From: Diplonema japonicum
Taxonomy: Eukaryota > Protista > Euglenozoa: Diplonemea
Direction: 5' to 3'
Assembly (NCBI GenBank): GCA_964019335.1
Contig: OZ025720.1
Location: 1-64,000, forward strand
Length of the DNA: 64,000 nt
Of the stretch, positions 1 through 5,100 are shown one piece after another. Both the position numbers and the translations under genes were made by a program. Position 1 is the first letter of the stretch; the number at the start of each line of letters is the position of its first letter. Below the pieces are notes generated by a model. The model was not told the DNA's origin. It did no database searches and saw only the letters and a program-made list of their open reading frames with translations.

Positions 1-1909
1 CGGGTTTGCGGGGGTTTGCGGGTTTGCGGGTTTGCGGGTTTGCGGGTTTGCGGGTTTGCGGGTTTGCGGGTTTGCGGGTTTGCGGGTTTGCGGGTTTGCG
101 GGTTTGCGGGTTTGCGGGTTTGCGGGTTTGCGGGTTTGCGGGTTTGCGGGTTTGCGGGTTTGCGGGTTTGCGGGTTTGCGGGTTGCGGGTTTGCGGGTTT
201 GCGGGTTTGCGGGTTGCGGGTTTGCGGGTTTGCGGGTTTGCGGTTTGCGGGTTTGCGGGTTTGCGGGTTTGCGGGTTTGCGGGTTTTGCGGGTTTGCGGG
301 TTTGCGGGTTTGCGGGTTTGCGGGTTTGCGGGTTTGCGGGTTTGCGGGTTTGCGGGTTTGCGGGTTTGCGGGTTTGCGGGTTTGCGGGTTTGCGGTTTGC
401 GGGTTTGCGGGTTTGCGGGTTTGCGGGTTTGCGGGTTTGCGGGTTTGCGGGTTTGCGGGTTTGCGGGTTTGCGGGTTTGCGGGTTTGCGGGTTTGCGGGT
501 TTGCGGGTTTGCGGGTTTGCGGGTTTGCGGGTTTGCGGGTTTGCGGGTTTGCGGTTTGCGGGTTTGCGGGTTTGCGGGTTTGCGGGTTTGCGGGTTTGCG
601 GGTTTGCGGGTTTGCGGGTTTGCGGGTTTGCGGGTTTGCGGGTTTGCGGGTTTGCGGGTTTGCGGGTTTGCGGGTTTGCGGGTTTGCGGGTTTGCGGGTT
701 TGCGGGTTTGCGGGTTTGCGGGTTTGCGGGTTTGCGGGTTTGCGGTTTGCGGGTTTGCGGGTTGCGGGTTTGCGGGTTTGCGGGTTTGCGGGTTGCGGGT
801 TTGCGGGTTTGCGGGTTTGCGGGTTTGCGGGTTTGCGGGTTTGCGGGTTTGCGGGTTTGCGGGTTTGCGGGTTTGCGGGTTTGCGGGTTTGCGGGTTTGC
901 GGGTTTGCGGGTTTGCGGGTTTGCGGGTTTGCGGGTTTGCGGGTTTGCGGGTTTGCGGGTTTGCGGGTTTGCGGGTTTTGCGGGTTTTGCGGGTTTTGCG
1001 GGTTTTGCGGGTTTGCGGGTTTTGCGGGTTTTGCGGGTTTTGCGGGTTTTGCGGGTTTTGCGGGTTTTGCGGGTTTTGCGGGTTTGCGGGTTTGCGGGTT
1101 TGCGGGTTTGCGGGTTTGCGGGTTTGCGGGTTTGCGGGTTGCGGGTTTGCGGGTTTGCGGGTTTCGCGGTTTGCGGGTTTGCGGGGTTTGCGGGTTTGCG
1201 GGTTTGCGGGTTTGCGGGTTTGCGGGTTTGCGGGTTTGCGGGTTTGCGGGTTTGCGGGTTTGCGGGTTTGCGGGTTTGCGGTTGCGGGTTTGCGGGTTTG
1301 CGGGTTTGCGGGTTTGCGGGTTTGCGGGTTTGCGGGTTTGCGGTTTGCGGTTTGCGGGTTTGCGGTTTGCGGGTTTGCGGGTTTGCGGGTTTGCGGGTTG
1401 CGGGTTTGCGGGTTTGCGGGTTTGCGGGTTTGCGGGTTTGCGGGTTTGCGGGTTTGCGGGTTTGCGGGTTTGCGGGTTTGCGGTTTGCGGTTTGCGGGTT
1501 TGCGGGTTTGCGGTTGCGGTTTGCGGGTTTGCGGGTTTGCGGGTTTGCGGGTTTGCGGGTTTGCGGGTTTGCGGGTTTGCGGGTTTGCGGGTTTGCGGGT
1601 TTGCGGGTTTGCGGGTTTGCGGGTTTGCGGGTTTGCGGGTTTGCGGGTTTGCGGGTTTGCGGGTTTGCGGGTTTGCGGGTTTGCGGGTTTGCGGGTTTGC
1701 GGGTTTGCGGGTTTGCGGGTTTGCGGGTTTGCGGGTTTGCGGGTTTGCGGGTTTGCGGGTTTGCGGGTTTGCGGGTTTGCGGGTTTGCGGGTTTGCGGGT
1801 TTGCGGGTTTGCGGGTTTGCGGGTTTGCGGGTTTGCGGGTTTGCGGGTTTGCGGGTTTGCGGGTTTGCGGGTTTGCGGGTTTGCGGGTTTGCGGGTTTGC
1901 GGGTTTGCG
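1..1909 (+). repeat. Tandem 8-mer array (GCGGGTTT)n, telomere-like, G-rich strand on +
   Basis: About 1.9 kb of cgggtttg units with homopolymer-length variants (a 9-mer TTTTGCGGG block at ~976-1077) and an abrupt junction with unique sequence at ~1910. The long ORFs over it are repeat artefacts. Confidence 0.95.
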
Positions 1910-2063
1910 AGCTTTAGAATCGTTGGTACCTCCCTCACCCCCCTTTGCCCCCCCTGGGATGCCGGCGGTAGGGCGCACCTCGGCGTTCATCCCCTCTCCT
2001 CCCCGTGTTCAGGGTTTCTGGGGCAGGGCCGCGCCTGTCTTCAACCCGGGGGGTGTCCGCCAT

Positions 2064-2522
2064 CTACCAGTATGCACCCTTCCCCTTTTCTTTTTTTTTT
2101 TCTTCTTCAACTATGGCAGGGTCGGCTGCGGAGGTCTCGGTTGCGGCAGCGGCGTTCGGGGCGGCAGGGGCTGCAGCGGCGGCCGTGGTTGCAGCAGGGG
2201 CTGCTGCTCTCTTGGTTGGACCCCCCATCCTCCCGCAAGAGCCTGTCCGTCGTCTCCGGAGAGAGGGGAGGTCCCCTTTTCGTACGGGCACCACGATGTG
2301 AACCTGCCACACCTTCTCAAGGGATTCCTTGAGAGCTTTGTCGTCTCGAAGAAGTCAAGGCAGGAACCGCACCTCCTCCGCGTTCTTCTTGTTGCGAGAC
2401 TTCAACACCTTCATCGCAAAGGTACCTCCATCCACTCTCCTCACCTCCTTGTACGCCAACCTCTGTCCGACGGACCCGAGGCGCTCCCTTTGCACGTACT
2501 TTTGAAGTACCGACGGATCCAT
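2064..2522 (-). pseudogene. Degenerate protein kinase N-lobe fragment
   Basis: The minus frame from ATG 2522 reads MDPSVLQKYVQRERLGSVGQRLAYKEVRRVDGGTFAMKVLKSRNKKNAEEVRFLP*LLRDDKALKESLEKVWQVHIVVPVRKGDL. This matches decayed subdomains I (LGxG), II (AMK), III (E) and V (HIV...GDL). There is an in-frame TGA at 2355-2357 and no HRD or DFG motif. Confidence 0.6.
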
Positions 2523-3603
2523 ACTTTGCTGTTGTTAATGTTCGCCATGTGGAAAGAGAGCGGGTATGCTGTGGTGTCGTCTTTGAATTTAAGATTCTCT
2601 GCTGGACACAAATTAATCAACAAGTGCATAAGCAGCGGGTTCGCGGCAACTCATCACCAATCATCAAACTCAAGTCGGTGGTTTCTAGTTTTTGTACCCT
2701 GGCAAGAAAAGTGAAAACCAATGGAATCAAAATTGAAAAATTGATCACCGCATTCAGGTCGATGGCTTCTAGTTTCGGCTGGGGTTGAGATGCATACCGC
2801 ATGCATTAGGACACGACGCGGAATGTAGAAGAAGCACAGTCAAGGAGACAGTAGGGCGCACCAACACCGGCCCCTGAACCTCTATATTATTTTCTTTTAT
2901 AGCTTACTTCTTTTGTCTTCGTTCACTCCATGCAACCTAAGCCCTTTAAACGCATACAGCTAAATACGACAGAATTTCAAGCATCAACAGCACTCATTCT
3001 GCATGCGGGTATCTTCGTGGCTTGCAAGGTCAGCTAACGGCTTGTCGCGCTTCTTTTACCATCTCCGCATGTTCAAATGCCTTTTCTTGCTGAAATGGTT
3101 GCGAAGCTGTCGAAAGTGGATATCAATAAAAAAACACAATCTCAAAATACTGTTAAGGTAATGGTGCAAGGCTTTTTTTTTTTTTTTGTTACAAATATTT
3201 ATCTTTCAAATTATAACTATATGCAAACTTGTGCCGAGCAAAAAACCTTCGCAGCTTTTAAAAACCTTTTTTGCTCGTGCGAGCAACAAAAACATATAGT
3301 CATAAAGAATTATTTTTCTTTTGCTTATAAAGATAAAGAAGAAAAGGGTCTCGAACACCATGCACTTCATTTCCCTTTTTACGTCCCGGAATTTAGTACT
3401 CAGTAGGCTTCAATGGAAAATGCAAAAGGTGACCCCAAGCAAAGAAAAAACGAGAAGTATGAAAACATTAAAAAATCCCATTTCAAAGGACCAAAGCATA
3501 ACGTGGCACACTGCAAAAATGGCGCTCTGCTTTGCTTCTATAAGACCACTTTGAAAGGATAGTCACAGCCACGAGCCGTTGAGGGCAAAGACCACACTGT
3601 ACA

Positions 3604-5019
3604 CTACACCCACTGACTACCGAGGCCGGACCTCACTATTCGGTGGTATGCTGATTCGAGGGTTTCATCTGTTTTGCAGAAGCAGAATCTCGCAAGGGAG
3701 TCTGTAATGTGCCTGTGCTCAGGAGCGTAGAAAGCAGATGCCGGAATGGCGGTCACCTTTGTTTGTGTTAATAAGAAAATACAACATACCCCCGCTTTTT
3801 CCGTAAGGATTCTGCACACGGCGAAGTCACGTCTCTCAGGCAGTGGGAGGTCTTCCGGTGCGTGCCACATAGGGTGCGGGTGCTGCATGGCGATCTTCGT
3901 TGTATCCGTAAGCATGAAATACCCCCCTTGAGGGAGGATGGGCTCCAACGACGCCAGACGCAGAAGCCCGGCAAGCTTGTCACGTTTTGCCTTCAGTGTA
4001 TCTCTCAAATCATCGAAGTAATTTATTTTCACGGCATGGTTCATGGCGTTGGCTGTGGCCACTTGCAGCACAGATGGCGTGCAGAAGTTAGACGCCTGGT
4101 GCACCCGCACCAAGGGTAGGATGAGAGGAGACGGCCCAAACACGTACCCAACACGCCACCCAGTTGCGGAGAAGGTCTTCCCTGCGCTGTAGATGGAGAG
4201 AGTCCTGTCCCACATCCCTGGCAAGGAGGCGATTCTCTCGTGGGTGCCCTCGTACACCATGTGCTCGTAGACCTCGTCGGACAGCACCACCACCTGGGGG
4301 AACTTCTCGAGCACCTTCGCGATACCGACCAGCTCTTCTTTGCTGAATACCTTGCCCGTCGGGTTGTGCGGTGTGTTCAGCACCAGCAGCTTTGTCTTGT
4401 CGGACAGCGCCGCTTCCAGCTCAGACAGGTTCAGCTTCCAGTCTGCACTCCCCGTGGCCCAATCTGCACGGAGGGGGACACCCTTGGTGGTCGCCCCCAT
4501 GAGGTCCGTCGCAATCTTCGGTGCATCGAAATATGGCTCGATGCACACTACCTCGTCGCCGGGGTCCACCAGCGCCATCACTGCGCTGAAGATGGCGTTC
4601 GTGGCACCACCCACAACGGCGACTTCTGTATCCTTACAGATATGCCTCTCGAACAGGTCGGTGTAGTAGGAGGCAAGGCAGCCCACAAGCAAGGGGTGCC
4701 CCGCAGGCCGTGTGTACTGGTTGTGGTCTGAGCTGATGGCCTCGTGCGCCGCATCCTTCACAAAATCAGGGATTGGGTAGTTTGGGAACCCTGCACCAAG
4801 ATTGATGGCATTGTGCTTAATCGCTAGATCTGTAAACTCTGCAAAGACGCTTGGCTCGACAGCCGCCATCCTCACACTTGACAGCGGGCTCATAAAGCTG
4901 TCTCTGTTAGCGGGGCGCACGATGGTCGGGTCTGATTCATAAAGGATTTTGTGATCGTGCACATGGCGCAGCTGCTGCAAGGCTTTCCCTTTTCCCTTGA
5001 GACGACTGAAAACGCTCAT
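3604..5019 (-). CDS. Class I/II PLP aminotransferase (kynurenine/glutamine transaminase K-like), probable mitochondrial presequence; 1 intron (3757-3789)
   Basis: Motifs INLGAGFP, NTPHNPTGKVF, SDEVYE and SAGKTFSATGWRVG (PLP lysine). Removing the 33-nt GTATGT..AAAG intron restores EKAG|VTAIP. A long pyrimidine tract plus AG precedes the start on the minus strand. Confidence 0.93.
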   Translation of the reverse strand: MSVFSRLKGKGKALQQLRHVHDHKILYESDPTIVRPANRDSFMSPLSSVRMAAVEPSVFAEFTDLAIKHNAINLGAGFPNYPIPDFVKDAAHEAISSDHNQYTRPAGHPLLVGCLASYYTDLFERHICKDTEVAVVGGATNAIFSAVMALVDPGDEVVCIEPYFDAPKIATDLMGATTKGVPLRADWATGSADWKLNLSELEAALSDKTKLLVLNTPHNPTGKVFSKEELVGIAKVLEKFPQVVVLSDEVYEHMVYEGTHERIASLPGMWDRTLSIYSAGKTFSATGWRVGYVFGPSPLILPLVRVHQASNFCTPSVLQVATANAMNHAVKINYFDDLRDTLKAKRDKLAGLLRLASLEPILPQGGYFMLTDTTKIAMQHPHPMWHAPEDLPLPERRDFAVCRILTEKAGVCCIFLLTQTKVTAIPASAFYAPEHRHITDSLARFCFCKTDETLESAYHRIVRSGLGSQWV

Positions 5020-5030
5020 TTTATGCATCA

Positions 5031-5100
5031 CTGGGGAGTATTAAGAAAAGACGAAATAAGAAAAAAGAGATGAAGAAAGGAAATAAGGAGAAAAAGAAAA
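5031..5100 (-). promoter_or_regulatory. Polypyrimidine tract plus AG, putative trans-splice acceptor (representative example)
   Basis: About 60 nt of T/C on the minus strand ending in CCCCAG about 11 nt before the ATG, with no upstream coding exon. Confidence 0.6.

Follow-up and report, generated by a model that had tools for sequence, protein, structure and literature searches.

The left end of scaffold C73

The DNA analysed here (64,000 nucleotides of the Diplonema japonicum genome, called the window below) is C73:1-64000, and its base 1 is the start of C73, a scaffold of 484 kb that carries arrays at both ends. At this left end lies one tandem array with a period of 8 nt, for which Tandem Repeats Finder (TRF) gives 239.2 copies with 97% matches and 2% indels (Table 1). 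This agrees with the original prediction of an array of about 1.9 kb of a G3-containing 8-mer at the window start. From base 1 the + strand reads (TTTGCGGG)n; the G-rich strand is the + strand and points inward, as had also been predicted, and the strand that has its 3' end at the left terminus of C73 reads (CCCGCAAA)n. The periodic match stops at position 1909 (...TTTGCG). No A is found between 1 and 1903 of the array, and the 33 variant units in it all depart from the standard unit in T-run length (2-4) or G-run length (2-5). One of these variants, TTTTGCGGG, forms a near-continuous run at 976-1082.

Table 1. Features at the left end of C73 (coordinates are those of the window).
Feature	Position	Strand	Basis and remarks
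Terminal array (TTTGCGGG)n, left telomere of C73 (probable reading)	1..1909	+	TRF; dp350 probe matches; census of ends
Spliced leader fragment, 17 nt, CCAACGATTCTAAAGCT	1910..1926	- (sense)	Abuts the array directly
Member of a subtelomeric repeat family, ~290 bp	1928..2218		Local blastn; distal side cut short here
Kinase-like N-lobe fragment with in-frame stop (probable)	2230..2522	-	Translation, motifs judged by eye
Class I/II aminotransferase, first intact gene next to the telomere	3604..5031	-	Pfam PF00155, 2.2e-56

The 17 nt that follow the array correspond, in antisense, to the 5' part of the spliced leader. The array meets a spliced-leader copy at nucleotide 19, and it is here that a truncated sequence headed by a spliced leader was capped. 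The element behind it shares 75-90% identity (local blastn) with subtelomeric loci of C6, C16, C17, C20, C30, C59, C76, C80 and C93. The C59 copy of this element is truncated at a different point, and there the array sits directly on it.

A pseudogene had been predicted beside the array, and for this claim the outcome is mixed: the kinase-like translation does contain an in-frame stop, whereas a Pfam search of the small ORFs adjoining the array, this one included, gave no significant match. Judged by its translation, the feature is probably the pseudogene remnant of a kinase-like N-lobe. The aminotransferase, whose best homologues come from diplonemid-like transcriptomes in EukProt (at most 83% identity), is transcribed toward the chromosome end. 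The same direction holds throughout the window: its real ORFs of 250 aa or more number 20 and are all encoded on the - strand, which means that they are transcribed toward the array, as had been noted from the start. The region 1840-4840 is present in 14 sequencing runs from 7 studies.

The unit of the array was at first not recognised as a described telomere. It is in fact identical to the 8-nt unit of the D. papillatum telomeric repeat, represented by the 26-nt oligonucleotide dp350, CAAACCCGCAAACCCGCAAACCCGCA, which is named "telomeric repeat" in that species (Valach et al. 2023, BMC Biol 21:99, Additional file 1, Table S2; PMC10161547) and detects its PFGE-separated nuclear chromosomes on Southern blots (PMC10161547). 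In the window, the 166 exact matches to dp350 are confined to 17-1907 and to the - strand. The Southern signal in the congener is therefore wet-lab evidence for the repeat that is independent of sequencing. In the D. papillatum paper the repeat serves only as a probe and its polarity is not treated; strand polarity, overhang, telomerase and junctions are absent from the main text and the supplements searched (PMC10161547). Telomeres are not mentioned in the main text of the D. japonicum genome paper (PMC13598402), our literature search returned nothing that links diplonemids with telomerase or telomere polarity, and a 16-mer of the repeat was not found in the literature searched. The repeat unit is thus already known as a probe, and the inversion of its polarity appears to be unreported.

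Scanning metagenome and prokaryote genome collections with the repeat yielded only short unrelated microsatellites. One of the loci (L049) is bacterial and has no match to the D. japonicum genome, and two others (L161 and L167) proved to be the two sides of one bacterial repeat.

Arrays of one polarity at the ends of the assembly

The genome in which we took a census of ends amounts to 62.5 Mb in 132 sequences, with a longest sequence of 1,191,308 bp and scaffold gaps of 200 N. An exact 32-mer of the repeat occurs 5552 times in it. Ordinary telomeres at other ends, which the original prediction suggested looking for, were not found: (TTAGGG)4 has zero occurrences in the whole assembly.

We fetched 58 scaffold ends, and 46 of them carry an array in which the 5' end of the G-rich strand is outermost, none carries an array of the opposite direction, and 12 have no array. 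A single polarity at 46 of 46 array-bearing ends (p = 1.4e-14) supports the earlier suggestion of a non-canonical chromosome end with reversed polarity. Accordingly oriented sequence is read on the + strand, TTTGCGGG at left scaffold ends and CCCGCAAA at right ones. These 46 arrays measure 27-1903 bp (median 284 bp), the window array being the longest (1903 bp in this census), and 1858 of their 2023 units (92%) are perfect. Retroelements lie proximal to the simple repeat, which is outermost at each of the 46 capped ends.

A pattern census, which counts each array once at its inner junction, gave 143 matches for the observed polarity. Among C1-C75 it places the arrays on the + strand at contig starts and on the - strand at contig ends (about 62 ends), and genome-wide arrays occur at more than 100 ends. 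The mirror-image search of the whole genome, in which a C-strand tract of 24 nt or more had to give way to other DNA, gave, against these 143, only 21 matches at about 14 sites, all of them short tracts (24-40 nt). Where the tracts have small coordinates or belong to contigs of known length, they are close to contig ends and, with a single exception, point outward.

Four arrays lie inside scaffolds (one in C20, two in C30 and one in C64) and could be taken as an interstitial satellite or a chromosome-fusion scar at which contigs merely break, a reading that the original prediction had included. All four abut N-gaps and follow the same polarity rule, which identifies them as contig ends joined by Hi-C. 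Interstitial arrays would moreover be expected in both polarities at contig ends, whereas one was found in 46 of 46, and nine scaffolds among C1-C75, including C73, are capped at both ends. With arrays found strictly at contig ends or N-gaps, we give this explanation practically no credence. The fold-back end that had also been proposed finds no support either, since the contigs start in the array and are not palindromic.

The N-gap joins of array-bearing ends are located at ~401.2-401.6 kb in C20, ~334.6-335.1 kb in C30 and ~165.9-166.1 kb in C64 (L061-L063), and in C30 two telomeres face each other across the gap. Each of these three scaffolds probably joins two separate chromosomes, or else reflects telomere clustering in the Hi-C signal.

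Nanopore sequencing mis-calls telomere repeats, and the 8-mer could on this account be a J-modified TTAGGG called wrongly; more generally, a sequencing, base-calling or assembly artefact, including flipped ends, might have produced the pattern. The present assembly consists of HiFi circular consensus, not of nanopore reads. It was built for strain YPF1604 from PacBio HiFi data (102x) with hifiasm and YaHS, reaches QV 59.4, and is reported as 62.30 Mb in 118 chromosomes with a longest scaffold of 1.19 Mb (PMC13598402). A nanopore or base-J mis-call of TTAGGG is unlikely in view of the HiFi assembly and of the fact that the repeat works as a Southern probe. The proportion of perfect units, the presence of arrays at more than 100 ends and the chromosomes detected by dp350 in the congener also speak against an artefact, and because the junctions between array and unique DNA lie inside contigs, scaffolding cannot flip the polarity. 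The base-calling artefact considered in the original prediction is therefore very unlikely at QV 59, and we hold an artefact of any of these kinds to be highly improbable.

Contig starts, junctions and subtelomeric elements

At 25 of the 46 array-bearing ends the contig starts exactly at GGGTTTGC (p = 1.3e-11), and at 36 of the 46 it starts within the G-run. Reads that stop where a natural 5' end has been processed would produce such a preferred first base, which recalls the human C-strand with its precisely defined 5' end.

The inner junctions comprise 46 different sequences and all 8 phases of the repeat. Among the partners are an apparent truncated coding sequence (left end of C12) and the shared subtelomeric element, whose cut lies at one point in the window and at another at the left end of C59. 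The array is thus joined directly to unrelated unique DNA in all phases, as would follow from de novo capping of eroded or broken ends. These junctions indicate erosion or breakage followed by de novo addition of repeats.

The preferred start also bears on the possibility that the arrays are only subterminal, the true terminus (canonical repeats, heavily modified DNA, a hairpin or a protein-linked end) being systematically missing from the HiFi data. Euglenozoan DNA carries base J, and the 12 of 58 scaffold ends that have no array would also suit this possibility. Base J does not stop the PacBio polymerase. The contigs terminate within arrays of only 27-1903 bp at a strongly preferred nucleotide, which fits natural ends and not random loss, and the assembly offers no other candidate terminal repeat, (TTAGGG)4 included. 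We therefore consider a missing terminus quite unlikely.

Several families of dispersed elements were observed near the ends. The full 39-nt spliced leader (...CCAACGATTCTAAAGCTACAGTTTCTGTACTTTATTG) has 225 occurrences in the genome, dispersed and with differing upstream sequences. The copies that we inspected, such as those in L076 (C5:1-2000), L083 (C2:998951-1000809) and L063 (C30:333000-336500), head retroposed units of ~150-200 nt plus poly(A) and are not tandem SL RNA genes. They lie on the - strand near contig starts and on the + strand near contig ends, so that their sense strand points to the nearest telomere. The poly(A) of these units adjoins the array at the AAACCCGC phase, as though the TTT of a nicked G strand had served as primer.

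A second family is a 37-nt module, CCAATTTTAAAAAACCAAGTGATTGCTTTATTTCTCG, which in every copy leads, at one and the same phase, into a G-strand tract that begins with TGCGGGTTTGCGGG; this tract is usually 8-26 nt long and gives way to differing unique DNA. The module was found at 16 loci (L104-L119, for example C6:1781-1803 and C71:482118-482308), which without exception are subtelomeric and share the orientation of the arrays; two of the copies stand in head-to-tail tandem. It could represent read-through of a template boundary in the telomerase RNA, a terminal retroelement tailed with the repeat, or copies made by break-induced replication. Distal to the module in the C6, C16 and C17 subtelomeres (L092, L094, L095) lies a degenerate TG-rich tract of ~200 bp (TGTGCG/TGTCTG-like), whose TG-rich strand runs toward the chromosome end, a strand bias opposite to that of the terminal array.

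A probable telomere of inverted polarity and its proposed maintenance

The original prediction had proposed a search for TERT, and such a search led to a 1083-aa ORF at C41:533009-536260 (L120:2009-5260), albeit with marginal scores. The ORF holds a Telomerase_RBD domain (residues 325-431) followed by RVT_1 (695-797), which is the correct domain order. Telomerase_RBD scored 28.4 bits in the genome scan; on the ORF itself the values are 23.8 and 24.2 bits, both domains being just under the Pfam cut-offs. Homologues are detectable only in diplonemid data sets, where both Pfam domains are precomputed, and a comparison with solved structures found no sequence similarity. Going by its sequence, this candidate is a very divergent telomerase (TERT) that is intact and conserved across diplonemids.

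We were not able to single out a telomerase RNA locus among the 249 genome matches of at least 12 nt that a template search with one of the eight repeat phases produced. These matches are mostly subtelomeric repeat families or coding sequence, and the candidates that we inspected are of the same kinds. An identical isolated 21-nt tract, GCAAACCCGCAAACCCGCAAA, was seen in two unrelated contexts, C61:449,493-449,514 (L088) and C45:533,198-533,216 (L087). The C45 copy is ~11 kb from the right end, and the C61 copy is interior and outside any long ORF; the latter may be worth a look as a candidate template of the telomerase RNA.

We think it probable that positions 1-1909 are the genuine left telomere of a small diplonemid chromosome, with reversed polarity and a C-rich 3' strand, and most likely made by telomerase. 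As read from the assembled ends, its polarity is the reverse of that of every characterised telomere, and in place and behaviour it appears otherwise to be an ordinary telomere. The C-rich (CCCGCAAA)n strand would run 5'->3' toward the end and carry the terminal 3'-OH, and the G-rich (TTTGCGGG)n strand would have its 5' end at the terminus, preferentially as 5'-GGGTTTGC. Since polymerases extend 3' ends only, the template must in this model be G-rich and its product CCCGCAAA. The 3' end would be extended by the divergent TERT encoded on C41, reverse-transcribing a G-rich RNA with about 1.5 copies of UUUGCGGG; this template would contain about GGGUUUGCGGGUUUG, the synthesised unit would be CCCGCAAA, and the variants in T-run and G-run length would come from slippage on the template. 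Telomerase is our choice of maintaining enzyme because a TERT candidate is present and has homologues in diplonemid data sets.

We know of no precedent for a C-rich 3' telomeric strand, and the prior for such a strand is accordingly low. Our opinion is evenly divided on the more specific proposal that diplonemid telomerase copies a G-rich template and adds C-rich CCCGCAAA, that the overhang and the end protection would be on the C-rich strand, and that the 5' end of the G strand would be precisely processed. In some arrays a single variant unit also recurs almost without interruption (TTTTGCGGG at 976-1082 in the window, and a run of nine in the C64 array), which speaks against a single fixed template. 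Such runs argue mildly for recombination, rolling-circle copying or a second template allele.

The same runs would suit terminal arrays that are inverted as described here and are maintained without telomerase, by recombination, break-induced replication, rolling-circle copying, or a retroelement reverse transcriptase acting with an RNA tailed by (UUUGCGGG)n. Such maintenance would also be in keeping with the abundance of spliced-leader-headed retroelements that point toward the ends, and with the 37-nt module and its G-strand tract, whose 16 subtelomeric copies have differing proximal flanks and fit break-induced replication or a repeat-tailed retroelement. Against it stand the intact TERT gene, conserved across diplonemids, and the short (median 284 bp) and homogeneous arrays. 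The 46 unrelated junctions in all phases would moreover need an activity that seeds repeats independently of a template, not homology. On balance we regard maintenance without telomerase as rather unlikely, and prefer a telomere that is probably made by telomerase.

It is instructive to set these ends beside known systems. With the canonical (TTAGGG)n telomeres of kinetoplastids and vertebrates they share a short tandem repeat at the ends with uniform polarity relative to the end, a G/C strand asymmetry with G3 tracts, a TERT gene and the capping of broken ends. They differ in the 8-nt unit with an internal GC, and in that the 5' end of the G-rich strand lies at the terminus and the 3'-ending strand is C-rich. 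What is expected of a simple-repeat telomere is thus found as regards the array (46 of 58 scaffold ends), its uniform polarity and the presence of TERT, whereas a G-rich strand running 5'->3' toward the end is not found in the assembled ends.

De novo telomere addition, as in ciliate macronuclei, Plasmodium and nematode chromatin diminution, offers a second comparison, with direct joins to unique DNA, truncated genes or repeats, and all phases at the junctions. D. japonicum likewise has many small chromosomes and no obligatory subtelomeric element. It differs in its reversed polarity, and in that there is no evidence in it for programmed or developmental fragmentation.

Telomere-targeted retroelements (Bombyx SART1/TRAS1, Drosophila HeT-A/TART and the Penelope-like Athena) are, like the elements described above, concentrated at ends in a fixed orientation with telomere tracts between them, and in D. 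japonicum the poly(A) tails adjoin the repeat at its AAACCCGC phase. Here, in contrast, the terminus is always the simple repeat, and the elements carry the cell's own spliced leader at their 5' end. A retrotransposon telomere of the Drosophila type has no terminal simple repeat, and all 46 capped ends have one.

All telomerase-based telomeres characterised so far have, to our knowledge, a 3'-ending strand that is G-rich, a bias kept even at the retroelement ends of Drosophila. A G-rich 3' strand is presupposed for the binding of the G-overhang by POT1/CST-type proteins, in the G-quadruplex and t-loop models, and when leading and lagging strands are assigned at telomeres. An inverted polarity at the assembled ends of a high-quality assembly would surprise specialists.

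That truncated genes are capped directly points to a highly dynamic karyotype, made up of more than 100 small chromosomes. Diplonemids belong to the most abundant protists of the sea, and D. papillatum can be cultured and transformed and is genetically tractable, which makes the question of polarity directly testable. If the inverted polarity is true, diplonemids would be the first lineage of eukaryotes to depart from the rule of the G-rich 3' telomeric strand, and diplonemid telomerase, its template and the end-binding proteins would need re-examination. An opposite polarity in a whole eukaryotic class would make that rule contingent, not mechanistic.
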